DNA of 64,000 bases, taken from the sequence record PQ464590.1; one strand, given 5' to 3'. Shown in pieces: positions 8,873-55,030 of this stretch (the first letter of the stretch is position 1; each line of letters begins with the position of its first letter). The notes under the pieces were generated by a model. That model was given only the letters and a program-made list of their open reading frames with translations, was not told the origin of the DNA and did no database searches. Both the position numbers and the translations under genes were made by a program.

Positions 8873-8948
8873 GGGTCGGGGCTGAGTGGATTCGAACCAC
8901 ACTTATTCAGTACTCGAACTGTTCTACCTGTTGAACTATCTAGCCCCG
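8873..8948 (-). tRNA. non-canonical tRNA-like element (76 nt; possible mimic or pseudogene)
   Basis: D-arm GTTC-AACAGGTA-GAAC; T-arm GTGG-TTCGAAT-CCAC; acceptor CGGGGCT/AGCCCCG; degenerate anticodon arm GTTC-GAGTACT-GAAT; ends ACCC. Confidence 0.7.
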
Positions 8949-19996: not shown

Positions 19997-21198
19997 AACT
20001 AATTATACAGTACTGAATTATTTTTTGCAAGTACTAAAAATAGTAGTAGACAATTCATTTCTATGTGATAAGATGATTCCAGATTTAAAACAATTCGATT
20101 CCAGATACTGCCAGGGAAAAAACAACCCTGACGCGGTAGGCTAGCCGCACCCCGCGATCTAGCAAAGGTAAATGCGAATCATTCCTATTTGCAAATGAGA
20201 ATCAATCTCATATGCGAACGAGTATCATTTGCAAATGCAGATGATAACCATTCTCATCTGGCTCAAAATTCGAGTCGGCTTTAGCTCGCCCTAAAGAAAG
20301 CCACCAGCAACCCTTCGTGTATCCATAGTACTGCCATAGTACTGCCATAATTCTTCAATTAATCTCAGTACTGAATGCTTAGCCAAACAGTACTGTTTAT
20401 GTTTTCCGATGGAGGTCAGAAATCTTATTAAGTGGTGAATCCAATTCACTATTCACAGTACTATAGGGATAGGTGGTCCCATGTTAATAGTACTACTATA
20501 GTGAACTGCACTTACTTAAACAACATTCGGGCAGTCATGAAGTTCACCGTGTTCATGAAAGTAGACAGTCCCTAGGCTTAGCAGTACTGGAATGATGGAA
20601 GGCACACACTTCAGTACTGAAAGCTTTCTTTTACTCTTTGACGATGTACACCAGGATATAACGTAGGAGCTTAGCTGGTGTGCCTATCTCCCTCGTAGGA
20701 CGCTATTATCACATATACGCGTGTCCACGTCAAGCTTTATTTTCAATAATGCAGTACTGAATTTTTGGGCCAGGCATGATCGAGATTTAGGATGGAGCAC
20801 CTTCCAGATTTTTGCTGGAGGGTCATTGACTTTTTTAAATTTTCAACTTTTTGCTGGAGGGTCATCGGGAATTTCCCTGAAGCCTGGTTCCCTCCTTTCT
20901 CCCCACCTCATTGTACACCCCTCTTGTAGTACTGTCAAGAAATACTTCTTGTACTCTGACGTTACAAGAAGATATAGTTGCAGGGGTGGTACAGTACTGA
21001 ATAGTACTTAAGAATGCTTTGCCGTGTTTACCTGTACTTCTGTACATATGTAATTATACCCATACATATAAAAATGTACAGTACTGTACGTATATACAAA
21101 TGTGCCTTTTACGGGGTGTTGAATCCTTTCGATAACGTTTTGTCCAGGGGGAATTTACCCCCTGTGTAAGATTACGTTCTCTTTCAGGAACTAACACC

Positions 21199-21903
21199 CT
21201 ATAGACCTGCTGCGTATCTAAGGATATGTAGTACTGTAAGTTTATCTCCCTGTGCTATTAGGGAATCTATTTTATGTTGTATCTGTATAGCTCTTTGATA
21301 CACGGGTATATAGTACTGTGTATGTGGAACTATAGTATCTAATTGGAATTGTAGTTCCTCTGGTATTTCTTTGTCGGTGATATTATACGTTTGTACTATA
21401 TCATTGAGTTCTTTATCTAGTTCTCCTTCACTGAATTGGGGATGAGATATTAGTCTGAATTTGAATTGCTGGGATTGTTGGGAATGTCTCATCCTTCTTA
21501 CTGATGAAGCTGGGATTGTGATACCTTCGTTATACAGTACTACATAGTCATTGAATGTATCTTCTACTGGATCGTATCCCATATGGATTGCGTGTACTTT
21601 ATTGTTCGAGAATACTATGAGGCACGGGACATTATTGATAGTACAGATAACATCTATTACATATGGAGCTTTTGTTCTTAGGGAGTATTTTGTTTTTCCT
21701 TGTTCTGCATATGATGTTGCTAGAAGGATTTGGACGCCGAGATATTTGGCGTACTGTTTAGTTCTTTTATCTGCGTTATAGATAATATTAGTATCTACTG
21801 ACTTTACGTTCTTTACGTACATAGGAGCTTTACCTGGAGTTGTATGTCTCCGGTTCGCATTGAAAGTACGTTGGTAATGTTTTTGTAGGTTAGATAGTTT
21901 CAT
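21199..21903 (-). CDS. hypothetical protein
   Basis: 234-aa AT-rich ORF; probable paralog of 21904..22557. Confidence 0.75.
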   Translation of the reverse strand: MKLSNLQKHYQRTFNANRRHTTPGKAPMYVKNVKSVDTNIIYNADKRTKQYAKYLGVQILLATSYAEQGKTKYSLRTKAPYVIDVICTINNVPCLIVFSNNKVHAIHMGYDPVEDTFNDYVVLYNEGITIPASSVRRMRHSQQSQQFKFRLISHPQFSEGELDKELNDIVQTYNITDKEIPEELQFQLDTIVPHTQYYIPVYQRAIQIQHKIDSLIAQGDKLTVLHILRYAAGL

Positions 21904-22557
21904 TTATTGTTCCGTGTTAGTATAGTTCAGTACTGTGCAGATGTTTAGGAGTTCTAGTACTGTGATATCTTTGTGAATGTTCCTGGCGATATGTAGGCGT
22001 AATTCGTTCGCTGAGATAAAGATGTGAGGATCGGGAAGAACGAATTCGAGTTGTGCGATTTCTTCTTCTGAGTACGGTTTATCGTCTTGAATATGTTCTT
22101 GTAGTACTGGTATTAGTTGTGTTGATTGTTCGGAGTTCCTGATGAATTTGCCGTGGCTTTGGTCATGCATAATATTAGTACTGTACGGATGTAGTTCTAT
22201 ATCGTCATCCCCGAACATATATGGGAAGTATTGTTCTTTGGTACAATGTGTGACGATGCCATACAGATCTGACTCATCGAACATAAGTACTGTTGGGGTG
22301 TTATGGATATAGATTTCCATATCGAAAGTTTCGGGCATAGTACTGGAAGTATTGAGGGCATGTTCTGATTGTTTTACGTCCACGCGGAAGATGTTTGCGT
22401 GTTTAGTTTTCTGGTACTGTTGTAGTACTTTAGTGAGTTTATCGTTCCCGAATTTCTTATGCGGCATGTAGTGGAAGTTCGAGGATGTGGTATTGAATTC
22501 TTTGCGTAATTTTTTGAAGTGCAGGTGGTAGTGCAGTGAGTGTTTAGAGAGTTTCAT
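21904..22557 (-). CDS. hypothetical protein
   Basis: 217 aa; promoter TAGACA-17-TATAAT at ~22588-22616 with a 14-bp palindrome TCACAGTACTGTGA in the spacer. Confidence 0.75.
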   Translation of the reverse strand: MKLSKHSLHYHLHFKKLRKEFNTTSSNFHYMPHKKFGNDKLTKVLQQYQKTKHANIFRVDVKQSEHALNTSSTMPETFDMEIYIHNTPTVLMFDESDLYGIVTHCTKEQYFPYMFGDDDIELHPYSTNIMHDQSHGKFIRNSEQSTQLIPVLQEHIQDDKPYSEEEIAQLEFVLPDPHIFISANELRLHIARNIHKDITVLELLNICTVLNYTNTEQ

Positions 22558-22629
22558 ATAGGATTCCTTTGGGGTTAATTTTGCATGATTATATCACAGT
22601 ACTGTGATGATGTCTAGTGGTGTTTTGGG

Positions 22630-22635
22630 TAAATA
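22630..22635 (+). promoter_or_regulatory. T4-type late-promoter-like TAAATA (also 27080-27085 and 31818-31823)
   Basis: TAAATAC(G/T)(T/G)TATATT recurs ~30 nt before the first gene of each plus-strand unit; no -35 box. Confidence 0.65.
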
Positions 22636-22667
22636 CGTTATATTCATTTTTATATGGAGATTTTTAG

Positions 22668-23531
22668 ATGATACCTTTTGCAAGAATGTTACAGTACGGA
22701 AATGTAGTTTCTGTGATTAATAACATGGGTACACGTACCTTGATAACTCCTTCACCGTCGCCTACTGCGAGATTTTCTTTTGGGTATACAACATTAGGGG
22801 ATTCTGCGTATTTGTATGGTGGTGCGGTAGTTGGTTCAGATTATAACAATGAATTTTGGAGATTTGACAGTACTACAGAGACTTGGACACAATTACAGAG
22901 TGGTTTGCTTTCTATGCATGGTTCAGGGTTAGCTGCTTACAATGGTAAGGTATATATGTTCGGTGGGAACACTGGGACAACGGTTAATAGGTTTTTCATT
23001 TATGATATTGCGAGTAATACATGGACTGAGAACACGACGAGTATAAATCCCCCGACTGCAAGGCATCATTGTCGATTTGTCAGTACAGGTAATGGGAAGT
23101 TATATTTGTGGGGAAGTTTGAATGGTTCTGAGTTATATTCGTATGACATTGCGAGTAATACGTGGGTGAAATTAGCTTCCAGTACTATTCAGAATTCATT
23201 AGCTGGGGATATGGCGACTGATGGAACTAATTTGTACTGTTCTGGGACATCTAATCAGAAATACAATATAAGTACTGGCACCTGGAGTACAATGGGTGCA
23301 TTAGAGGGTAGAATGACTTACAGTACAATAGAATCGCGTTTGTACTGTGTGAACAGTGAGCGTTTATATCAATATAGTACTGGATTAAATTCATGGGTAC
23401 AGGTTGGTGATAACAGTGCTATTGGTATTTCACGTGGGGCATTATATTCATTTGTTAGTTCATCTAAAGTACTGAGTGCATTTGGTTCAGTAGGCAGTAC
23501 TGCTAACAGTAGTCAATATAAATTTATATAA
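22668..23531 (+). CDS. Kelch-repeat beta-propeller with MIPF tag
   Basis: Repeats of YLYGG/YMFGG...YD..S.TW. Confidence 0.85.
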   Translation: MIPFARMLQYGNVVSVINNMGTRTLITPSPSPTARFSFGYTTLGDSAYLYGGAVVGSDYNNEFWRFDSTTETWTQLQSGLLSMHGSGLAAYNGKVYMFGGNTGTTVNRFFIYDIASNTWTENTTSINPPTARHHCRFVSTGNGKLYLWGSLNGSELYSYDIASNTWVKLASSTIQNSLAGDMATDGTNLYCSGTSNQKYNISTGTWSTMGALEGRMTYSTIESRLYCVNSERLYQYSTGLNSWVQVGDNSAIGISRGALYSFVSSSKVLSAFGSVGSTANSSQYKFI

Positions 23532-23541
23532 GGAAACGGAG

Positions 23542-24750
23542 ATGATACCTTTTGCAAGAATGATACAGTACGGGAATGTTGTACAAGAAAATAAGATAGT
23601 TAAGATTGATAATAATGTTGCTGCTGGGGTGTTGTTATTATCTAGTACTGGTGATTTATATGGTTTCGGTCCTAATGGTGCATATCAATTAGGGTTAGGA
23701 CATAACAATGCGGTGACTACACCGACATTATTATTCAGTGGTGTTAAGAATTTTTGGAGTGCTGGAGGTGATTCGGTACTACAGACTACGGATGATAAAT
23801 TTTATGCTGCTGGGGTTGGTAATATAATTGACGCGGCGAACACTTCCAGGCAGGTATGGACTGATATAACTTCTGTCTTTTCTGCTGTTGACATATCAGA
23901 TATTAAGAAAGTAGATATAAAGGCGAACTGTTTAGCAGTACTGACAAATTCGGGGAATTTATATTGTGCAGGATACAATGGTTATATGGCATATAATGGT
24001 ACTGCTACAGTTCGGTACGCGAACTTAACATTAGTTCGTTCTGATGTAATTGATATTAAGGGCAATTACAATTTAGGTTTATTTACATTAAGGACTAATG
24101 GTAAAATATATGGTGGGGGATATAATACATCTGCCCAGATGGGTTCAAACGGTGGTGATTCACAGAATCCTAATACAGTAGTATATTATTCTGGGATTAC
24201 AGGGTCAAGTGATTGGTCTTATGCAAATTTAGATTGTTTATACACATGTAGGACTGGTACATTTTTGAACAACGCAAAATTAGTAACTGGTTCTGATACC
24301 TCTCTAAAAATGCGTGTAAGTGGTACTGGTACTGATGGTTCCTTATCTGGGGTAACTGGTAAATGGTCGGGATTCCAGACTGCATGGGGTTCTGAAAACA
24401 TACTACAAGCTGAAAACATTTTAAAGGGATTTGATAGTAGTGCTAATACTACATCTCCATTTTTACTTACTAGTGATGGTATATGGACATGTGGTAATAA
24501 TGCATATGGTCAGCAGGGAACAGGTGACGTATCGAACAAATTAATTTATACTAGAAATAGTAAAATAGATAGTATTGTTAAAGATTATAGTAAATTAACT
24601 ATTTTTAATGCAGCATTTTATACTTCGTACTTCGTATATGATAATAAATTATACGGGACTGGTGCGTTAGGTTTTGCCAATGCTGGATCGTTAATACCTG
24701 GTCACAGTACTGGGTCTAGTGTATATGTAGAAATACCACTACCATTTTAA
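23542..24750 (+). CDS. RCC1/BLIP-II-like beta-propeller with MIPF tag
   Basis: G.LY..G.N..GQLG.G repeats. Confidence 0.8.
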   Translation: MIPFARMIQYGNVVQENKIVKIDNNVAAGVLLLSSTGDLYGFGPNGAYQLGLGHNNAVTTPTLLFSGVKNFWSAGGDSVLQTTDDKFYAAGVGNIIDAANTSRQVWTDITSVFSAVDISDIKKVDIKANCLAVLTNSGNLYCAGYNGYMAYNGTATVRYANLTLVRSDVIDIKGNYNLGLFTLRTNGKIYGGGYNTSAQMGSNGGDSQNPNTVVYYSGITGSSDWSYANLDCLYTCRTGTFLNNAKLVTGSDTSLKMRVSGTGTDGSLSGVTGKWSGFQTAWGSENILQAENILKGFDSSANTTSPFLLTSDGIWTCGNNAYGQQGTGDVSNKLIYTRNSKIDSIVKDYSKLTIFNAAFYTSYFVYDNKLYGTGALGFANAGSLIPGHSTGSSVYVEIPLPF

Positions 24751-24762
24751 GGAGAGAGAGAA

Positions 24763-25890
24763 ATGATACCGTTTGCAAGGATGATACAATACGGGAATGT
24801 TGTTACCCCAATAGAAGAATATGACAGAAGTATGCAATCTCAATATAATGCGGTATATTATTTGCATCGTAATGGGGATTTATATTCGTACGGGAATAAT
24901 AACTTAGGTCAATTGGGCGTTGGTGATGCTGCGAACCGAACTGTATGGACAAAAGTACTGCAAGATGTTAAAAAGTACTGGTTAGGTGTTCATGGATGTT
25001 TAGCAGTAAAGACCGATGGTTCATTGTGGTACACTGGTAGTGCTACTGCGTTTCCACAGTTAGGTTCAACAACATATGTGTTTATTAATGTGGACTCATA
25101 TTTTTCTGGTGTTGGAATTGATAGTGCCATGATTCGAGATGTTATGATAACAGATAGTATTAAGGTTATAACAACTGATGGAAGATTTTTATATTGTGGT
25201 TCAAACGGGTCTAGACAACTAGGTACTGGTTTAACAGCTAACGTTCCAACATTAACATTTGATCCTAATTTTACAAATATAGTATCTATGGGTGGAGCAT
25301 TTGATAACACAGTACTGATATTATCTAATGGTGAAGCATGGCAAGCGGGTGCTTATCGTAATAATACAGGCGGGAGCACGAACCGAAATCCATTTGCTAA
25401 AGTTCTTGATGGTGTAAAATATTGCGGTTCTGCATTTCAAAGTACATATTATTTCATGTTAGATGGGACAATCAAAGTTACTGGATATAATAGTTATGGT
25501 CAATTGAGTACTGGTAATACTACAAATACACCAGAGGGTTCAATGGTACAAATATCACATACGTACGATCCAAATTCGGATATTAAAATTTATACATCTT
25601 TATCTAACAATGCTGGAACATCACCAGTACTGTATCATAATGGATTATTATGGAGATGTGGGAGTAACTCAACAGGACAGGTAGGTATTGGTTCAGTTGT
25701 ATCACCACAAACACTGTTAGTTAATCCTTTAATGACAAACGTTCCTAGTGTTAAATATTTCAGTGCTGATAATATAAGATTCTTTGTTATTGATAATGAA
25801 TATAAATTATATACATGTGGGTCGGTGTCATTAAATGGTGTTCCTAATTTGGATACATTAACATACGCTGGCGTACAGCCGTGGAATTAA
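24763..25890 (+). CDS. RCC1/BLIP-II-like beta-propeller with MIPF tag
   Basis: GDLYSYGNNNLGQLGVG and related repeats. Confidence 0.8.
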   Translation: MIPFARMIQYGNVVTPIEEYDRSMQSQYNAVYYLHRNGDLYSYGNNNLGQLGVGDAANRTVWTKVLQDVKKYWLGVHGCLAVKTDGSLWYTGSATAFPQLGSTTYVFINVDSYFSGVGIDSAMIRDVMITDSIKVITTDGRFLYCGSNGSRQLGTGLTANVPTLTFDPNFTNIVSMGGAFDNTVLILSNGEAWQAGAYRNNTGGSTNRNPFAKVLDGVKYCGSAFQSTYYFMLDGTIKVTGYNSYGQLSTGNTTNTPEGSMVQISHTYDPNSDIKIYTSLSNNAGTSPVLYHNGLLWRCGSNSTGQVGIGSVVSPQTLLVNPLMTNVPSVKYFSADNIRFFVIDNEYKLYTCGSVSLNGVPNLDTLTYAGVQPWN

Positions 25891-25900
25891 GGAGAGAGAT

Positions 25901-27040
25901 ATGTTACCATTCGCAAGAATGATACAGTACGGAAATGTTGTACAGGTAAAGGATATAGTTGATATACAAGTATCCAGAACTCACGCATTAGTACTGGATA
26001 GTGATGGAAACTTATGGGGTCGTGGAACTAACACGAACAACATATTAAACCACACTGGAATGAGTAATACTAGTACTTTTGTATTAGTTGATACTGGAGT
26101 GACTGCAATGTTTTGTGGTTATATCCTTACCCTGTATGTAAAGAACGGGGTATTATATAGAATTGGTTCATCAATGACATGGGACACCGGAGCGGTTCTA
26201 GTACCGACTGCGGTTTCTATTCCATTTTCTGCTGCATCCATTAAGAAGATTCAATGCGTTACCAGTACTAGTATAATGATACTATTGAATGATGGTACTA
26301 TGTGGTACAAAGGTGCAGGTACTAACGGTAGATTTGGTAATGGCAGTACTGCATCTGTTAGTACATGGACATTAAGTACTGTTACTGATATAAAAGACAT
26401 ATATCATTGTGTATGCTTTTTAGAAGGTAGTACAGCGTTTAGTATCTTATTGAAGAATGATGGTACTGTATGGGGAGCAGGTAGTGTAGCACTGAATACT
26501 ACGTCTAATACATTTAGATTCAATTCATACTTAAGCACTGCAACGTGGTTCCAGCGTACAATACAGAGTGATATAGTTCAGATTGCGGCTGGATCAGGTA
26601 GTAGTGTTTTATTCCTGGACAGTACTGGTGTATTGCGTGGAGATGGAAATACCAATGGTGAATTAAGTGGGAATACCACGTCTGGTACGTACAATAATAC
26701 ATTAATGGCTAACGGTGTGAAGTTATTTGGTCTGAACTGGGAAAGTTCATATTATGTACAGACTGCTACGCCTACGGTATTAAATGCTGGTGGACGAAAT
26801 TATAATTTATCGTCCTCATTCACTTCACCTGGTTCGTATGTAGGTAGAGTCAGTACTGATTTATCAGAGGAGATTAAGGCAATATATACAACCAGGGGTG
26901 TTGATATTGGTTTTGGTATTACTTATATTTCATTACAGGGTAATAACGTAGTAATGGGTGGTAACAGTACTGCTTATCAGTTAGGTGTGAATACTGGGAA
27001 TATCAATTTAGTTCAAAGTAACTTACCTGGTGTAAGTTAA
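25901..27040 (+). CDS. RCC1/BLIP-II-like beta-propeller with MLPF tag
   Basis: HALVLDSDGNLWGRGTN repeats. Confidence 0.8.
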   Translation: MLPFARMIQYGNVVQVKDIVDIQVSRTHALVLDSDGNLWGRGTNTNNILNHTGMSNTSTFVLVDTGVTAMFCGYILTLYVKNGVLYRIGSSMTWDTGAVLVPTAVSIPFSAASIKKIQCVTSTSIMILLNDGTMWYKGAGTNGRFGNGSTASVSTWTLSTVTDIKDIYHCVCFLEGSTAFSILLKNDGTVWGAGSVALNTTSNTFRFNSYLSTATWFQRTIQSDIVQIAAGSGSSVLFLDSTGVLRGDGNTNGELSGNTTSGTYNNTLMANGVKLFGLNWESSYYVQTATPTVLNAGGRNYNLSSSFTSPGSYVGRVSTDLSEEIKAIYTTRGVDIGFGITYISLQGNNVVMGGNSTAYQLGVNTGNINLVQSNLPGVS

Positions 27041-27044
27041 CAGG

Positions 27045-27077
27045 ATGCCTGGTACTTTTGGGTACTGGGCATTTTTA
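27045..27077 (+). terminator. intrinsic terminator
   Basis: ATGCCTGGTAC/GTACTGGGCAT 11-bp stem plus TTTTT; near copy at 31782-31814. Confidence 0.75.
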
Positions 27078-27110
27078 ATTAAATACTGTATATTAAATGA
27101 GGGGATTTAT

Positions 27111-28304
27111 ATGATACCTTTTTCAAGGATGATAAAATACGGGAATGTTGTTGACCCTATTAGTACTGATAATATTAAACGGGTGGATGCGAATTCATCA
27201 GGAGGTATGGGAATATTGTACAACAATGGTGATTTGTGGGTTCGTGGAACTAATAACTTTGGATGTTTAGGCACTGGTAATAATTCTCCAGTTACTTCAT
27301 GGACGTTAGTTCGTTCAGGCGTAGATGACTTTTGTTTAGGTGTTACTGGAATGTTGGTAAAGAGTTCCGATGGTAAATTATTATATAATGGGCGTGACTC
27401 AATTTTGAATAATAATACAACATTTTTACAATTTGCTGATTACACCGCACAATTTACGCCATCTGGTTTTTCGGTTCATAATATTAAGCAGATGCAGGTA
27501 GGACAATATAGTGTATTAATACTAATGAATAATGGGGTATTATTGGCATTTGGAAGAAATAACTCAGGAGAATTCGGTGACGGGTCATCTAGTAGTACTT
27601 CAGGGTTGGCAATCCGACAGGTAGCGGCTAATGTTGATAAAATCCAATTATACAATTTAAATTCTGGATATTTAAGTGATGGAAAATTCTATCGTGCTGG
27701 ATATAATGCTAACTATGCGTTAGGTAATGGAACTACTAGTGATATACGGACTTTTCAGGTATATAATCCACCAAGTGGTGAAAGTGCAATTATAGATTTC
27801 AACATAACAAATTACGGTACACGATTATTAACCTTATCAAGTACTTCAGGATATAACATGTATCAGTGTGGTATTAACACGAGTTATCATTTAGGGGTAA
27901 ACAGTACTACTGCTACTTTTGTTATTCCAACATTTAGTACTATGCAATCTATATTGCCATCATCAAATATAGAGTCGCACGCACTTAATATAAAGGGTCA
28001 AGTTAGTTTAGGGGATTTAATATTGCCTAAACAGAATCCTAATTCTTATTTCTGGGTTAGTGGTGATAATAGAAATGGTGCATTTGGTACGGGTGATACG
28101 GCTAACATTTCTGCGTTGTCAATGATTGGTGGTAAAGGTTTACCTAATAATATTGATTATAGTTCTGAATATGTACATGTAGTTTCTTGTTCATTTAATT
28201 CTAATTTTATACTCATGAACAATACCATTTATGGGTGCGGGGTGAACTCTGGATTCGGTTTAAATAGTACAACGTTTGTTAGTTTAGGAACATATCCAAC
28301 TTAG
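27111..28304 (+). CDS. RCC1/BLIP-II-like beta-propeller with MIPF tag
   Basis: Start reassigned to MIPFSRM after GAGGGG RBS; RCC1-like repeats. Confidence 0.8.
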   Translation: MIPFSRMIKYGNVVDPISTDNIKRVDANSSGGMGILYNNGDLWVRGTNNFGCLGTGNNSPVTSWTLVRSGVDDFCLGVTGMLVKSSDGKLLYNGRDSILNNNTTFLQFADYTAQFTPSGFSVHNIKQMQVGQYSVLILMNNGVLLAFGRNNSGEFGDGSSSSTSGLAIRQVAANVDKIQLYNLNSGYLSDGKFYRAGYNANYALGNGTTSDIRTFQVYNPPSGESAIIDFNITNYGTRLLTLSSTSGYNMYQCGINTSYHLGVNSTTATFVIPTFSTMQSILPSSNIESHALNIKGQVSLGDLILPKQNPNSYFWVSGDNRNGAFGTGDTANISALSMIGGKGLPNNIDYSSEYVHVVSCSFNSNFILMNNTIYGCGVNSGFGLNSTTFVSLGTYPT

Positions 28305-28316
28305 GAGAATAAAAAA

Positions 28317-29468
28317 ATGATACCTTTTGCGAGGATGATAAAGTACGGGCAAGTTATCCAACCATTGCCTGGAGTAAAGAAGATATTAGCTGCGTCTTCA
28401 TGGTGTATGGTGCTATATGAGAATGGTGATTTATATGCACGTGGGCGGAATGCTGGAAGTACATTTGGTGATGGTTCAGCATCTAACACAGACGTTATTG
28501 GTGATTGGAAATTAATACAGTCCAGTGTCAAGGATGTATGGAGTTCATTAGGAACAACGTTCTGTATTACAATGGACAATAGAGTGTTAAGTTCAGGAGC
28601 AATACGTGGATTAACTGGTGGAACTGCTAATAGTACTCAAATATTCACTGACAGAACTAGTATTTTTACGGATGCTGGTTTAGCAGTACAAGATATAGTT
28701 GATATGTCAGTTGGCCCGTACGATGTATATGCATTGACAGTTTCAGGTACAGTATATAGTGGTGGCACTAACTTTTCAGGCCAGCACGGTACTGGAAATA
28801 CCACAGCTAGGGCATTTGCATTGAATACGAATTTTGTGAATGTTAAGAAGATCAGTTCATATGGTGCACAGGGCGGAACCTTCTGGTACTTAGACACATC
28901 TAACACATTATATGGCACCGGAAATGGTTCTGTTGGTCAGTTATTATCGGTATCCGGCACTGTCAGTACTAAGAGAGTTTTGAGTACTGATGTAATTGAT
29001 TACAGTGCGAATATTAACTGTTTCTTTATTATAAAGAGTGATGGTTTATATTGTGCTGGTTCTCAATTCAACGGACAATTAGGTGATGGAGTTAACAGTT
29101 CTAACATAGGTAATGTCGGTAGGACTACATTATTTAAGCATGAACAATTTACATCAGCCCCGTCATATGTTTATAACGATACATATATGACTGTTGTTCG
29201 TTATAATGATACTTGGTACGTATGTGGTAACGTAGCTAAGAGTGGTTATGGTCAAAATAATAGCTCCGCGTCTTTTGTAGTTAACAGTACTACAGTACCG
29301 AAAGTGTCTGATCCTAAATGGGCAATTGGCAATAATAACTCTTATGTAATATCGGAGTTCGGGGTATTACATGGTACTGGTACATATTCAGCAGCTACTG
29401 ATTTGTTACCTGGCTATACTGTTGCCCAATATACGTTTGTACCATTAAGCACGGCAGGGATACAATAA
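28317..29468 (+). CDS. RCC1/BLIP-II-like beta-propeller with MIPF tag
   Basis: GDLYARGRN and GQLGDG repeats. Confidence 0.8.
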   Translation: MIPFARMIKYGQVIQPLPGVKKILAASSWCMVLYENGDLYARGRNAGSTFGDGSASNTDVIGDWKLIQSSVKDVWSSLGTTFCITMDNRVLSSGAIRGLTGGTANSTQIFTDRTSIFTDAGLAVQDIVDMSVGPYDVYALTVSGTVYSGGTNFSGQHGTGNTTARAFALNTNFVNVKKISSYGAQGGTFWYLDTSNTLYGTGNGSVGQLLSVSGTVSTKRVLSTDVIDYSANINCFFIIKSDGLYCAGSQFNGQLGDGVNSSNIGNVGRTTLFKHEQFTSAPSYVYNDTYMTVVRYNDTWYVCGNVAKSGYGQNNSSASFVVNSTTVPKVSDPKWAIGNNNSYVISEFGVLHGTGTYSAATDLLPGYTVAQYTFVPLSTAGIQ

Positions 29469-29483
29469 GGAGATTAAAAAAAA

Positions 29484-30620
29484 ATGATACCGTTTTCTAG
29501 ATTAATAAAGTATGGTAACATACGAGAGGTTAAAATACAAAAAATTGATACGACGAACACAAGTACGGTCGTACTATTTGATAATGGTGAACTTTATGGC
29601 TTCGGTCAAAATTCCTTTGGTGTTCTTGGGTTGGGACATACTGATATAGTATTTGATATGACACTATTGAATACGGGCGTTAGTGACGTATGGTGTGCAC
29701 AGTCTGATATATTAATTAGAAAAGGTGACAACTTTTATTATGCAGGTGCTGGTCAAATTATTGGTAGTACTAGTGTATCAAGTAGCGTTTTTGTTGATTG
29801 TACATCGATGTTTGGAACTCTCAATAAGGGAAATATCAAAAAAATACAGTTAAGTTTAGGTACATTAGTACTAATGAATGATAATAAGCTTTATGCTTGT
29901 GGTTTCAATAATGGTTTTTATGGTAATGGCTCATTCAACCGAGTTTCAGCACTAACACAGGTTCAAACTGATGTTCTTGACGTGAAGACTAACAGAAATG
30001 GTACAGCCTGGATAAAGAAAACTGATAATAGACTTTATGCTTGTGGTCAGAACAGTTCATATCAAACAGGTGCAGGTACTAGTTCAACGGTAGCTTCCTA
30101 TACTTTAATATCTAAATTTACTACAGTTGATTTAGATAATTTATCAGTAGCTGATAGTACTGCATTTTATTACACTGGGGCTGCTTTATATGGTTCAGGA
30201 ACCAAAATGGGAAATGGAAATAACACCAGTACTTCACAGAACTTTAATGGTTCCGTTGTTTTTAATTTAGCTAACTATGTTAGGATGTATAGTACGAATT
30301 GGGGAACGACCGCTCCATTTATTATGGGTTCTAGTACTGGTAATGGTATTCCTGATTCATTAAATTTCTGTGGTTCAAATACATACGGTGCATATGGTAC
30401 GGGTACTACTGGGACAGTAACTGCATTTACACCTATGAGTACCTTGAATTCGGTACTGTCTGATTTTACAAAGATTACGCATATTCAATCCAACGCATAT
30501 GGTACATATGTGGTGGCTGATAATAAATTGTACTGTGCAGGGAATGCTGCTGGTGGTGCGGTTCCAGGAGTTAACACTGGTAATCAATTATCATTTATAG
30601 AAGTTGAGTTACCCATATAA
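29484..30620 (+). CDS. RCC1/BLIP-II-like beta-propeller with MIPF tag
   Basis: GELYGFGQNSFGVLGLG; closest in pattern to 23542..24750. Confidence 0.8.
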   Translation: MIPFSRLIKYGNIREVKIQKIDTTNTSTVVLFDNGELYGFGQNSFGVLGLGHTDIVFDMTLLNTGVSDVWCAQSDILIRKGDNFYYAGAGQIIGSTSVSSSVFVDCTSMFGTLNKGNIKKIQLSLGTLVLMNDNKLYACGFNNGFYGNGSFNRVSALTQVQTDVLDVKTNRNGTAWIKKTDNRLYACGQNSSYQTGAGTSSTVASYTLISKFTTVDLDNLSVADSTAFYYTGAALYGSGTKMGNGNNTSTSQNFNGSVVFNLANYVRMYSTNWGTTAPFIMGSSTGNGIPDSLNFCGSNTYGAYGTGTTGTVTAFTPMSTLNSVLSDFTKITHIQSNAYGTYVVADNKLYCAGNAAGGAVPGVNTGNQLSFIEVELPI

Positions 30621-48053: not shown

Positions 48054-51000
48054 TTCAGAACCCTCTCGTTTAATGTATGCCAGTATTATAACAGTACTGG
48101 CATTATTGTCAATCACCGTTCACGATATTTTTGATCTCTTCCAGACGAGGATAAGCTTCAATCACAACGGCCTCAATCGCTTGCATGATGTCGCCATTAT
48201 GTTTGCGGTACACGAGCGGCTCGCCGTACAGTACACCATCGTACTGACGATCTATCTCTACTGATACGGACACACACCATGAATCAACCAAGATGGTTGC
48301 TCCAGCTTGCACAATCTCTTCTGCCATTTTACTAATAGTCATGTTATCTCCAAATAGAAACGGGTACTCATTGAGTACCCATTATTGTTACTGGCAAATA
48401 CCTTCTTCAAGGATATTCATCTGACTGTTACGGATCTGATAAACAACACCGTCAGTACTTTGAGCCATAGCTAGCATTTTACCGGCTTTGTTACCCTGGA
48501 ACACGTACACTTCAGTACCGTCATCGAGTGATCCAGTTTTGACGAAGGTGAAGATTACGCTACCAAATTGCAACTTAGACCCAGAAGAGTACACGCGATG
48601 TTGTGTACCATCTGCACGCTGACACTGTAGAACATCAGCGGCTGCTGTACCAGATACCAGTGCAGAAACTGCCAGTACTGCACCGATCACTAAACGTTTC
48701 ATTTTGAACCCCTTATTCTTTGATGATACCCATAATTTCGTCGAACTTTTCACCAATACTTTTGGTGGCAGAATCAACACAAGTTCCTGCGGTTACTGGA
48801 GTTTCGTACACTACTTTACCAGCGTAGAAACCTGCACCTAAACCAATTACTAATGCTAAAACATACGGCATATTTTAAATCTCCTAAAGGATTACGTAAA
48901 TTGCAGAGAAGTATACCATCACGAATGTCAGAAAGCAAGCTGATGGTGCTAGTATTTCTAAAATATCCAGTACTGAATATTTCATTACGCGTACACACCA
49001 GCCATGATGTCATTGATGACCTGCTCTACACTCGCGGGTACGTAGAACTCTTTGTTCGTTTCGAGGTTATGAATGTAGATCTCTTGCAGACAACCACCAC
49101 TTTCAACCGATCCACCAGTACTAACTGATACACGATAACCGTTCAGATTGAAGATGAACGCAGCATCAACTGGTTTCATGAAGGTATCTGGACGTTTAGT
49201 GCTCAGAGAGATGATGGTGAAGCCTTGGATATTCAGTTCATGTGACATAGTTTAATCCTCTTTGTTAGTTAAGGGTGACGGGAGAGGGATTGTAACCCCC
49301 AAAGACATCCAGCATTACCTGTTTAGATGCTGCTTTTTAACTTTTAAGCTACCCCGTCTTGTTGAAGCTAGTATCTCAGAAACCGTCAAACTCGTCAAGC
49401 ATTATTTTACTCTTTTTTAGTAGCAGAACCACGCACGACACGCAGGGCATTTTACACCACCACCTGGAGCACAAGCAGTGTCTGGATGTAAACAGTACTT
49501 CTCGCCACTGTACAGTTCGTTGTTCGCTTCGTATACTTTATTGATTTTCTCGAAACCAATAACCTGATGACCGTATCCGTCAGTAAGACTAACGTACTCG
49601 CAGTTGTCTTTGCGAATACGATTCACAAAGTTCACGCCATCACGAACATTGTCGTACTGTTGGAGTGAGGATTTCGGATAGTCTTTCATCTTGTAGTTGA
49701 TTGATACAACACTCATTTTACTTCTCCTTCACTGCACAAACAAATGCCCACTCTGAATTGGTTAGTAATGCGATCTTACCTTTGGAAGTTATAAGGTAAA
49801 TGTCTTCCCCGCTATAATCCAATTTGTCATAGCTAACATCGTATTTTTTATACTTAGTGAACGCCGCCTTAAATCCAGCGTCCAGTACTTTGTTTAGGAA
49901 ATCACGTACCTTTGTATTTTTATAAAATACAGTACGTTCAATAGTAACTTCACTAAGATCACGCCACTTCTCATCACCTAGTAGGTCATGCACATTCACA
50001 GGTTGTTCTCCTTCATGAATTTTTCAGCTTTATAGTTGAAACAGTAGTTCACATTAGCAGGGAACCCCATGTTACTCAGGATGGTATTCAGACGCTGTGC
50101 AGCATCATCTTCACCACATGCCCAGAAACCAGGAAGACCCAAGAACTCACACCAGTACGCACGACCATAATCGTCAATGTCAGCAGGGCAAGTCTCATCG
50201 GACTCTACCCAACGAGCCATACCATAACCGCTCATGTTGTCTTTGTACAGTACTAAATCATCCATGCAATCGCAGTTCGCTTCCAGGTCGCATTCACATG
50301 CAGATACATCAGTGCGGATAACGTAGTGAGGGATGATAGATTTGATATTTTTGATGTTCATTTGTATTTCCTCTTAAACGGTGGGGAGACATTCCCCACT
50401 TGATGTAATCAGTATAACAGACTATTCAGTACTGTCAACTATTTTAGAACGCGTGACAACGACAGTCTACTAATTCTTCGCGACAATCGAAGCAGGTGCT
50501 TTCAACCTCATGATGTTCTGCGTTGTCAACATCACCGACGCGACATTCATCAGTCGGACCAAAGGTGATAGTGAGTAGTTCATGGTTCTTAGTACACCAC
50601 AACCCAATAGTTTTGAATGGTCCATCTTCACTGAACTGCACTACAAAACCTTCAACACGTTTCTTGATAGATTCGAGTTGGCGTTTGAACTCAACGAATA
50701 CTTCTCCCTTACTGAAGCGTAGGGAATCAGTGAAATCTTCCAGGTGCTTACCGATATGGGCATCGCGTGGTAGCTGGATGTAGTTACGATTCAGTACTTT
50801 AGCGTTATGTTCTGCTTCTACCAGGGCTGCATCTAATTCAATACGAGTCATCTTTTATCCTCTGTGTTGTTGTTGGTGCTGATTATACATTACTGTTCAG
50901 CAGTGTCAAGCTCTTCTGGAACTTTTCTTAGAGCCACGTCCATACTCAATAATATGAACACCATGTACAGAAGAACATTCAGTACAGTAGGCGAGTCCAT

Positions 51001-52013: not shown

Positions 52014-52328
52014 TTATATTAGGGTATTACAGTACTTAATTAATTTGTCCAAAAATATATATCTATCTCTTCCGTACTTAGTGTTTTTGTCCCATTTATC
52101 CATATTACCTAAGAACGCGTCACGAGTTCCCTCGATTGGATAAGGATTGTACTTACCAAACAAATGGTGCATAGCATCATTCATGAATGCACCAGTATTG
52201 CTAGATCTTGGTGTACTTAGTAACAGGTTAACACATATTCCGTAACCCACATGTTCTACTTCCCCGTTCTTTAATTTCATTAAAGAATCAAGAATGTGTT
52301 TGGGATTGTAATAACGTTTATCATCCAT
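52014..52328 (-). CDS. GIC/YPxEG paralog family protein
   Basis: See paralog finding. Confidence 0.7.
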   Translation of the reverse strand: MDDKRYYNPKHILDSLMKLKNGEVEHVGYGICVNLLLSTPRSSNTGAFMNDAMHHLFGKYNPYPIEGTRDAFLGNMDKWDKNTKYGRDRYIFLDKLIKYCNTLI

Positions 52329-52386: not shown

Positions 52387-52704
52387 TTACATATGAGATT
52401 CACAGTACTGAATTAGTGCATCCAGTAGTTCTAAACGCTTCTTACCGAAGTTATTATTCGGTGCGTATTTGTTCAGAAGAAGTTCATACTTGCGTTGTTC
52501 TCCTTCAATTGGGTACGGCTCCCACTTACCATTGATGTGAGTCAATGCATCGACCATGAATTTATCAGTGAGTCGTTTGTTACCTAATCTGAATGCAATA
52601 TTGTAGCAAAGACCTGCATTGGTACGTGTAAACACTGGTTCTTTTCTTTTTAGATCTTCTTTGATTAGGGTTAAGATTTGATGTATTTGGTGGATATAGA
52701 ACAT
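52387..52704 (-). CDS. GIC/YPxEG paralog family protein
   Basis: See paralog finding; promoter TTGACT-17-TATAAT at ~52733-52761. Confidence 0.7.
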   Translation of the reverse strand: MFYIHQIHQILTLIKEDLKRKEPVFTRTNAGLCYNIAFRLGNKRLTDKFMVDALTHINGKWEPYPIEGEQRKYELLLNKYAPNNNFGKKRLELLDALIQYCESHM

Positions 52705-52799
52705 ACTTAGATCCTCTTATTGATTTACAAGGATTATAACTTTCCTCTCTGCGAGAGTCAAGAGAATTTTCACTTCGTTCAATTCTATTTTTTAATTAT

Positions 52800-53285
52800 T
52801 AATCCTGACGAGGTTTGATGAGGAGATTTCTATCCCCCACGAGGGAGGGATGAAGAGTCTGACGCTGGTAGCATCGGAGTACTGTATAGAGAATTGTCTT
52901 ACTAATGTATTGACACGGAAGCGGGTTGCCCTGTTTCTCCCTATCTCTGTTCTTGCAACGGTCGTGATCTTATCACACTTCAGTACTGAACTATACAGTC
53001 AATTCAGTACTGTGTTCGTCAAATTCAGGACGGATCTATAGCCAGCCTCTTTGACGAACTCCCTTGGATATTTGGTAGGAGTTGTCCTATATGTCTATCG
53101 AGGATTCCGTATCATCTTACCAGGAATCTTTATAGTGCCGCATTGCCGTGAGTGGTAGTTAGCCATCTTCTAACGGGTTTCATTTGCACTTCGTTGCGAT
53201 TGCCAACTCATCTACCCTCTACATTTTCGAGTGGATTAGGAACACGTAAACTCCAGCACATTTCTGTACTGGAGCCAATCGGACT
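52800..53285 (-). ncRNA. candidate ~490-nt structured non-coding RNA
   Basis: Promoter (TG-A-TATAAT at ~53293-53301); no minus-strand ORF; several stems of 6-10 bp; more GC-rich than its flanks. Confidence 0.6.
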
Positions 53286-55030
53286 TGTATCTATTATATC
53301 ACATTTTATGGAGTTATCCCAATTATTTTAGGACAACTTCCAATTCAACGATCTCATACTCTTCCAGTGGAACATACAGTACTGGCTCATCGAATGTACC
53401 CGCGAACTCATCATGTGTATGTTTTTGCTTCTCGAACGCAGTGAAAAGTTTTTCAAGTAAATCAGCATGAGGTTGAACATAAATGGTTGTACCTTCGTAC
53501 TGATAGTCTTTGAGATTCTTCTCTTCAACTAGTATGATTACTGCATTGTTACCCCAGTTATCAGTTTCGTACGTTTGGTACATGAAAGTACCTGTGAATT
53601 TATGGCGGAGTGCGAACATGTGTTCCCCTTAGTATTTGTTATCTTGTTTCATCATCTCTGTTAGCTCATCATCCAAGTACTGATTAACACCCAAATACCC
53701 GAATGCAACTGCTTCATCATCTTTGAGGATAGCAGAACTTACTAACTCACCTGAAGTGTACAGTTCATCATAGTTCTGCATAGCCAAGATGTACACATGT
53801 TTCAGTGTACCATCTAATGAAGCAACTAGCCCATTACGTGTTTCATACACTAACTTGTACAGAGGGAGTTTATTGTACTCCAGTACAGTCTTATGCATGT
53901 TTCAGTTCAACGATTTCAAAACCATCGAGGAAGCCCATGTCTACTTCAATGAACCGGATACTACCACCGTCGCCATAGTTGCCAGCTTGGTAAGATGTTA
54001 GAATCTTCTCCAGTACTGAACGATCTGCGTGCACAAATAGAAGTTCATCGCTATCACGATCAAGTGAATGAATAATTTCTTCATAGTAATGATACGGGTA
54101 GTAATGCATGTACTTCTTAGTTTCTGGATTATAGAATGCGAACATATTAGACCTCGAATTTTTTATTCATCAGGAACTTAGTGACATCGTACAGAGTATC
54201 ACGATGAATCATTCCATCCACTTCTAATTGAATACCTTTCAGGAGTCCGTTACGTGCTTCCACGCTAACCTCTTTATCCATGTACTCAATACACTGTTCA
54301 ACTGTACCGTCAAAGTCACGATACGTAATCTCGTATCCAGTACTGACTTCGGTCTTGATACGATACTTCGGTTCAATGTGACCAATCTCTACAATCTTGA
54401 ACCCCTTTAGGAGTTTGATATCACATGGCGTATCCAGATCACCGTAATTGATACTGTGATCAGTAATGGTCAAATCGCGGATACGTAGGATGTTCTCTAG
54501 CGTTGAACGATTTTGGTGCGTGTACAACGTACCACCGATAGTTACGAATGAGTACATTACTTCAGCCTGGTCATAACAATGTTCTTCGTAACCAATTTCT
54601 GCTTCAACGTGTGCGTATTCGTTTGTAGTCGGATTATAGAAAGCAAACATACTTATTCCTCTTTGTATTGCAATGCGGCTTGGGTAAGTGGTGATAATTT
54701 AGTTACAAAATCTTTGAAGTCAGGGTATTCGACAAAAGTCATACTAAATTTCCGCTGCACTACCATGCGTATAAACGCTACCATACCTACAAAACTCACT
54801 TCATCATGAGTACAAACATGACTGAACAGTTCTGCTAACTTAGGCTTGTATTCTTCTCCATCACAATCCCACGTTGCTAACAATTCTTCTGCATCGTTTA
54901 GTACTTTCAACTCCGGTGCATTCAGTGAAGAAAAGTCTTTATCCAGTATAGCATGAGCTTCACTAACTGTAATAGTGTTCAGGTGTACATCACATGGAAT
55001 ATCACGAAACTTCAGTTCATAAGGCACGTG

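Follow-up and report, generated by a model that had tools for sequence, protein, structure and literature searches.

The window analysed here is a stretch of 64,000 nucleotides (nt), identical to nt 1–64000 of Erwinia phage Hallingskeid (PQ464590.1), a jumbo phage of 366,158 bp whose relatives include RaK2, 121Q, PBECO4, GAP32 and CBB. Across positions 52704–53323 there is no open reading frame of 30 amino acids (aa) or more on the minus strand, and the frames found in this gap are short and confined to the plus strand. In GenBank, the region 52720–53331 is occupied by four plus-strand coding sequences (CDS) of 32–63 aa, each annotated as a hypothetical protein. An earlier note on this DNA had remarked on the gap, on an extended −10 promoter preceding it on the minus strand and on its raised GC content, and had read the locus as a large structured phage non-coding RNA (ncRNA). 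These observations are borne out: a TG lies ahead of the −10 hexamer of the promoter, and the GC content of 52800–53285 is 45.3%, compared with 33.9% and 39.1% in the two flanks and 40.3% in the entire window. The reading itself is supported by what follows. The locus is non-coding, has its own promoter and belongs to a conserved, covarying family, and comparison of the family members shows that minus strand 52762–53286 carries a gene for a predicted ncRNA of ~480–525 nt, with a pseudoknotted and strand-specific fold.

When the locus was compared by blastn with 50,697 phage records, matches were found at 270 places in 72 records, usually four or five per genome. The matches have 67–86% DNA identity over the non-coding stretch, while the flanking genes do not align. 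In Hallingskeid, the search for paralogs covered the window and record positions 64,001–364,000 of 366,158 (blastn, then a profile hidden Markov model, HMM) and found five full-length copies, c1 to c5, all on the minus strand; the copy in the window is c1. In RaK2, a full-length but divergent copy follows a sigma-factor gene.

Further copies were gathered by pattern scans with the invariant core. There are 16 copies in IMG/VR contigs, mostly on contigs of about 350 kb, 45 loci in metagenomes (pattern scan), and nine full-length copies in bacterial genome contigs assigned to Serratia, Citrobacter, Silvania, Enterobacter, Buttiauxella and Enterobacteriaceae, the nine including one on a ‘Clostridium’-binned contig that is probably mis-binned. 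From the viral-contig pattern scan, 11 of 27 loci had no nhmmer match to the family; these look like chance pattern matches. Copies occur in two of 5,426 complete Escherichia coli genomes, and no relative was found among 72,556 plasmids. The carriers are RaK2/121Q/GAP32/CBB-like jumbo phages and small integrated elements of Enterobacterales. In all, 82 HMM matches were gathered, of which 61 are full length and 41 are left after collapse at 95% identity. In a maximum-likelihood tree, the paralogs fall into orthologous sets that span the phage genera, and the bacterial copies branch from among the phage copies in two or more clades. Transfer of the gene between jumbo phages and islands has therefore taken place on more than one occasion, and the gene needs no fixed neighbour.

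The fold was analysed using a MAFFT alignment of 28 diverse copies. RNAalifold gave 63 pairs, 37 of them with compensatory changes on both sides, and additional long-range pairings were obtained from a covariation scan of all column pairs and from targeted counts. Over the 67 pairs counted, 97.4% of the cells are canonical, compared with 78% (maximum 79.5%) in column shuffles and 37–46% with slid partners, and 49 of the 67 have compensatory double changes. There are 146 G-U cells and only 9 A-C cells, and the structure therefore belongs to the minus strand, as read by the promoter. In addition, none of 100 shuffled controls folds as well as the minus strand (z = −3.27). The structure is kept in relatives, with strong strand-specific covariation, pseudoknots included, throughout a widely conserved family. 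The overall fold comprises about 13 helices, three pseudoknots and ~130 nearly invariant unpaired nucleotides (Table 1). The nearly invariant stretches between the helices include GAUGAG, GCAAAUGAAACCCG, ACGGCAAUGCGGC, CUCGAUAGACAUAUA, UAAGGGAG, ACGACCGUUGCA and GAAACAGGGCAACCCGC.

The same data bear on a simpler explanation, that the locus is a double-stranded DNA repeat with no function as RNA (a recombination site or the relic of a mobile element), or else that the small proteins are real. This would agree with the four small plus-strand CDS in GenBank and with the locus of one relative, which is annotated as a repeat_region. However, the excess of G-U over A-C marks the pairing as strand-specific, and the compensatory changes keep pairing, not sequence. 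Stop-free stretches in the RNA region do not exceed those of shuffled sequence in length, and indels between copies, which are not multiples of three, break the reading frames. In addition, the paralogs have not arisen recently from one another, but group with their orthologs in other phage genera. We consider this explanation extremely unlikely, and a pure DNA repeat or real small proteins effectively excluded. Short hypothetical protein CDS are annotated over each of the five Hallingskeid loci, and likewise in several related phage records; they are probably artefacts of gene calling on an ncRNA gene.

Table 1. Predicted features of the RNA locus and positions of the copies. Positions are those of the window and of record PQ464590.1, except for the copies in other phages.
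Feature	Position	Strand	Basis or remark
RNA promoter	53293–53322	−	TTGGGA, 18-nt spacer, TG-extended TATAAT
Predicted ncRNA transcript, copy c1 of five	52762–53286	−	profile match, alignments, no open reading frame
5′ hairpin just past predicted start	53251–53274	−	variable among copies, absent from bacterial copies
P1 (53237–39 with 53212–14) around hairpin P2 (53229–34 with 53215–19)	53212–53239	−	7 of 8 pairs compensatory
Hairpin P3, after invariant GAUGAG	53193–53208	−	UA/CG/AU and AU/UA exchanges
P4 (AGUGC 53186–90 with GCACU 53134–38)	53134–53190	−	alignment/covariation
P5 (CCGU 53173–76 with ACGG 53146–49), inside P4, which also encloses a variable-length insertion		−	alignment/covariation
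Hairpin P6 (GATTCC/GGAATC)	53103–53128	−	5 pairs, both sides changed in 6–15 sequences each
Small hairpin P6b (AGGA/UCCU)	53077–53088	−	between conserved CUCGAUAGACAUAUA and ACCA stretches
Hairpin P7, perfect 10-bp stem	53014–53059	−	base covaries; interior an optional module, missing in several copies
Hairpin P8, 12–13 bp, CAGTACTGAA/TTCAGTACTG	52981–53012	−	3–6 pair types per position; loop makes PK1
PK1: P8 loop 52993–98 with 52882–87 (CUGUAU/AUACAG)	52882–52998	−	alignment columns 371–376/525–530
Hairpin P9 (GUGAU/AUCAC)	52963–52977	−	precedes invariant ACGACCGUUGCA
PK3: GUUGC (52955–59) with GCAAC (52925–29) inside P10 loop		−	28/28 intact
PK2: 52944–48 (AGAGA) with 52888–92 (UCUCU)	52888–52948	−	alignment columns 432–436/520–524
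Hairpin P10 (GGGAG 52937–41 with CUUCC 52917–21)	52917–52941	−	covaries; invariant loop AAACAGGGCAACCCG
Small hairpin P11 (GATGCT/AGCGTC), probable only	52861–52875	−	4–7 bp hairpin in every copy; register varies in MAFFT alignment
G/C-rich hairpin P12, C5/G5 core 52834–47	52828–52853	−	C-G to U-G changes only
Conserved single-stranded 3′ tail	52804–52827	−	~8 variable nt, then CAAAYCUCGUCAR
3′ hairpin P13 (AGAAUU/AAUUCU), conserved loop GAACGAAGUGA	52762–52785	−	stem covaries among copies
Separate sigma-70 promoter TTGACT-17-TATAAT	52733–52761	−	11/12 consensus matches; serves downstream gene 52704–52387
Copy c1	53329–52770	−	HMM match
Copy c5	119997–119415	−	HMM match
Copy c2	197066–196432	−	HMM match
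Copy c4	276325–275690	−	HMM match
Copy c3	341661–341029	−	HMM match
EJP2 copies	37, 91, 171, 251, 293 kb
7t3 copies	31, 104, 163, 244, 326 kb
GAP32 copies	99, 178, 262, 341 kb

All of the stems that the earlier note had named are found at the positions it gave, and those that prove to be family-wide are P6, P7, P8, P12 and probably P11. Compensatory changes are seen in P6 and P8 and at the base of P7 (GTTCGTCAAA/TTTGACGAAC), and G-U wobble changes in P12 (TCCCTC/GGGGA). The five P12 pairs include 25 U-G cells and no A-C, and since its changes are solely from C-G to U-G, this hairpin is specific to the minus strand. At P11 a small hairpin is present in every copy, but its register is not constant, and it is graded here as probable. 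The 5′ hairpin (CTCCAGTAC/GTGCTGGAG) and the outer GATTGG/CCTAATC pairing are likewise present in c1, but lie in a region that varies among copies and is missing from the bacterial ones.

The loop of P2 is the conserved GAAAAUGUA. The loop of P13 is also conserved (GAACGNAGUGA), and within the Hallingskeid genome a hairpin with this loop is seen solely at the RNA loci. No pairing partner for the 3′ tail was found by the covariation scan or by RNAalifold. A closing helix between GAUGAG and CUCGUCA of the tail was considered, with three invariant pairs predicted and no covariation, and is not claimed. A fourth pseudoknot (GAAUU/AAUUC) conflicts with PK2 and sits in an optional module, and was rejected.

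In PK1, all six pairs are intact in 28 of 28 sequences and all six have compensatory changes; the partner strand lies ~110 nt downstream of the P8 loop. PK2 has five pairs, each intact in 27–28 of the 28 sequences and each with compensatory changes, and its 3′ strand directly adjoins the 3′ strand of PK1. PK3 shows one double change only, GUUGU/ACAAC in paralog c4. The PK1 and PK2 sequences differ between the Hallingskeid paralogs: CUGUAU/AGAGA in c1, UUGUAU/CGUGA in c2, UUAUGU/CGCGA in c3, UGAAUU/UGUAG in c4 and UUCGAA/UGUGA in c5. The pseudoknot sequences of the five co-resident paralogs look as if they are kept orthogonal, which fits selection against mis-pairing between co-expressed RNAs.

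Transcription of c1 is predicted to start at about 53286, because of the position of the promoter. The conserved core is 52804–53249, and no terminator defines the 3′ end. The unit is bounded by the separate sigma-70 promoter, whose −35 hexamer is directly abutted by P13. An intrinsic terminator with a U-run follows the core in many copies (in c2 at record positions 196574–196591), and is absent from c1 and c3. Downstream of this point, every copy keeps P12 and the tail, and most copies keep P13.

The promoter of c1 is also found ahead of c2 and c5, and every copy checked has a promoter of its own. The motif, a TGGGAYA-like −35 element with a TG-extended TATAAT, occurs about 15 times in the Hallingskeid genome, for example at record positions 102739, 114671, 146101, 170934, 201695 and 245665. 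The genes behind it are, by annotation, ssb, DHFR-RNase H-Dda, the late sigma factor, an ATPase and two tRNA-Ser. In phage CBB, a ‘divergent RpoD-like’ promoter with a TGAAACG −35 element lies upstream of DNA-synthesis genes (PMC5259590), and the predicted promoter class described here resembles it. A promoter class common to replication genes and tRNA-Ser suggests that the RNA would be expressed at the replication stage, together with the replication genes.

The arrangement at the 3′ side might suggest that the RNA is a cis-regulatory leader or insulator, controlling read-through into the downstream operon or the activity of the adjacent promoter. A promoter of early type directly follows c1, early-promoter-like sequence lies behind other copies too, and the internal terminator in many copies would also be in keeping with such a role. 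On the other hand, the downstream genes differ at each paralog and are convergent in some bacterial copies, the gene downstream of c1 has its own strong promoter, and a structure of ~500 nt with three pseudoknots exceeds known leaders. A leader function is consequently judged very unlikely. The two genes just downstream of c1, at 52014–52328 and 52387–52704 on the minus strand, are paralogs of each other, encoding 104 and 105 aa with a common ...NPYPIEG... motif.

A scan of the window against Rfam 15 at the gathering thresholds gave only a weak tRNA match elsewhere, at 8878–8945 on the minus strand (33.1 bits against a threshold of 29), which is not called by ARAGORN and is unannotated in GenBank. 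Scans by E-value, with a limit of 10 for c1 and of 5 for five other members, gave chance-level matches only; the Rfam 15 models include RNase P, group I and II introns, tmRNA, 6S, GOLLD, ROOL, OLE and HEARO. ARAGORN finds no tRNA or tmRNA in the RNA region. The earlier note had been unable to assign the element to tmRNA, RNase P or an intron class, and this remains the case. A by-eye likeness to RNase P in short motifs (GAUGA, and ACGACC-GUGCA-like) was dropped, there being no covariance-model match. No description of this RNA was found in the literature within reach of the search, which excludes unpublished and subscription-only work. The family therefore appears to represent a class of large ornate RNA that has not been described before.

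The closest analogues are GOLLD, ROOL and OLE, and the likeness is in general character only. Like GOLLD and ROOL, which are large ornate RNAs of phages and prophages, the present RNA is more than 400 nt long, with many helices, pseudoknots and invariant nucleotides, is carried by phages or integrated elements, and is not tied to any single neighbouring gene. ROOL and GOLLD RNAs are reported to form RNA-only homo-oligomers (PMC12286853). The present RNA matches neither model in sequence or structure, its hosts belong to the Enterobacterales, with Xanthomonas in addition, and not to the Lactobacillales or the rumen bacteria, there are several paralogs per genome, and the Hallingskeid copies are not beside tRNA genes.

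OLE RNA is another large, highly conserved ncRNA with many helices; it is chromosomal in extremophilic Firmicutes and depends on protein partners for its function. The present family does not match the OLE model, has no conserved partner genes nearby, and is borne by phages or islands. RNase P RNA, group I and II introns and tmRNA resemble it in size and in having a pseudoknotted core and conserved junctions, but none of these models matched in the six members scanned. Moreover, the order of motifs differs from that in RNase P, and the RNA is flanked by intergenic sequence, without a split gene that could supply the exons of an intron. PA5oct, a distantly related jumbo phage, has long ncRNAs of 236–619 nt identified by RNA-seq, two of which make up ~5% of phage reads (PMC7318152). 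They were considered as possible homologs, and nhmmer found no similarity at any of the four loci.

The bacterial copies sit in small integrated elements. The usual order in these islands is an integrase of the large serine or tyrosine type, the RNA, a CI-like LexA-type repressor on the opposite strand, a cro-like gene, and a conserved protein of 190–290 aa. In E. coli LR-29-1, the RNA lies in an island of ~10 kb between ffs and ybaA, which also contains an integrase interrupted by IS3, a small serine recombinase, and the candidate defence set PDC-M45 (DuOB, DUF488, DUF4326). No protein common to the islands and the neighbourhoods of the phage copies was found; the matches obtained were spurious open reading frames within the RNA and two unrelated proteins, a DUF4326 protein and an ADP-ribosylglycohydrolase-like protein.

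At four bacterial loci, a gene for a large serine recombinase precedes the RNA on the same strand. This raises the question of whether the RNA could be a guide or adaptor for a protein whose gene lies elsewhere, perhaps a nuclease, a recombinase or a modification enzyme, with the paralog-specific segments setting the specificity. HEARO RNAs, for example, turned out to be omega-RNA guides. The pseudoknot sequences peculiar to each paralog and the variable ~8 nt of the 3′ tail could be seen in this light. However, other islands have tyrosine integrases, no recombinase or nuclease gene stands beside the jumbo-phage copies, which have small hypothetical genes as neighbours, and the islands and phages have no protein in common. 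Mobile-element guide RNAs (omega RNA, bridge RNA) have an effector as their constant neighbour, and this RNA does not. Its variable segments are internally paired except for the ~8 nt of the tail, which is short for a guide. A guide function is therefore regarded as distinctly unlikely.

The placement of the copies in the phage genome is of interest. The copy midpoints in Hallingskeid are at 53.0, 119.7, 196.7, 276.0 and 341.3 kb, giving gaps of 66.7, 77.0, 79.3, 65.3 and 77.9 kb on 366 kb; five gaps as even as this on a circle are expected in about 1 in 10,000 random placements. In other genera, the order and dispersal of the copies are retained and the spacing is less even, with one gap of 112–130 kb in the four-copy phages. 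The genomes are syntenic by inheritance, and the spacing in other phages is therefore no independent evidence. GC skew shows no shift at the RNA loci and tracks the gene strand, although unidirectional forks would leave none.

These observations lead to the principal rival reading, namely that the RNA acts in cis, with each copy marking a replication origin and the transcript forming a persistent hybrid or the leading-strand primer, as with ColE1 RNA II or T4 oriF and oriG. The islands would then carry one copy in order to be replicated. Besides the near-even spacing and the dispersal retained in other genera, the copies have a single common orientation, which is that of most genes, and use the promoter class of the replication genes; T4 oriF and oriG use middle-mode promoters. 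The phage encodes an RNase H. There is a further likeness to ColE1 RNA II and the T4 origin transcripts, which are structured, promoter-driven RNAs of ~500 nt followed by G/C runs and AT-rich DNA, and occur as dispersed copies: on the 3′ side of the present RNA there is a U-run, and then a C-run/G-run hairpin and an AT-rich spacer. Nevertheless, ~130 invariant unpaired nucleotides and three covarying pseudoknots go far beyond the needs of known primer RNAs, and the RNA is far more conserved and pseudoknotted than these transcripts. It has no plasmid relative, and no replication-initiator gene was seen in the 8-kb windows around the islands or in the E. coli island. The absence of a GC-skew shift, the long gap in the four-copy phages and the inherited nature of the spacing elsewhere also count against it. 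An origin or primer function is thus considered unlikely.

Two other parts of the window may be mentioned here. Positions 20000–30000 have a GC skew of +0.21 and 37% GC, compared with about −0.09 and 40–42% in the neighbouring regions, and are possibly a strand switch or a foreign segment. At 48853–49420 there are three small plus-strand CDS between minus-strand genes, resembling the annotation over the RNA loci, and this may be another non-coding stretch.

On the basis of the conservation, fold and distribution described above, we favour, with moderate confidence, the proposal of a trans-acting RNA that works by means of its three-dimensional fold, whether as the RNA core of a ribonucleoprotein, as a scaffold that assembles itself in the manner of ROOL and GOLLD, or as a ribozyme. 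It would be made from the phage promoter class alongside the replication-stage genes and tRNAs. Because no partner gene accompanies it, the factors with which it works would be those of the host or others that are widely conserved. Four features point to such a role: an extensive core of invariant unpaired nucleotides, the double pseudoknot, the autonomy of the gene in horizontal transfer, and PK1 and PK2 sequences peculiar to each paralog.

Several points weigh against this proposal. That the copies are spaced almost evenly and all point the same way suggests a position-dependent role, exerted in cis. The internal terminator, lying upstream of the equally conserved P12, tail and P13, is not explained by a simple, single trans-acting RNA. 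The expression, ends and stability of all family members are predictions, and no RNA-seq study of any phage carrying this family was found in the literature. Finally, catalytic or binding activity cannot be inferred from sequence.

Few large, highly conserved RNAs are known from bacteria and phages and, to our knowledge, each one resolved so far (RNase P, introns, the HEARO guide RNA, the ROOL/GOLLD cages) has brought new biochemistry. With ~50 covarying pairs and three pseudoknots, the secondary-structure model of the present RNA is well supported, and because the hosts include the laboratory-grown E. coli phages 121Q, PBECO4 and phAPEC6, the RNA is directly testable. The loci are now filled in GenBank by short opposite-strand ‘hypothetical proteins’ that are probably spurious, which is of consequence for annotation.

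We tentatively suggest, as a possibility well short of even chances, that these RNAs form a new functional class of large RNA, which would be either a ribozyme or self-assembling particle that giant phages use in four or five versions, orthogonal to one another, and that defence-type islands have captured, or a set of evenly spaced RNA-defined origins of the 366 kb phage chromosome. If true, either would be without described precedent in bacteriophages. Its carriers are lytic jumbo phages on the one hand and integrase-bearing islands on the other, and the E. coli island has candidate defence genes; this links the RNA to the conflict between phage and host. The dispersed and nearly even copies raise the question of how a phage genome of 350 kb is organised or replicated.

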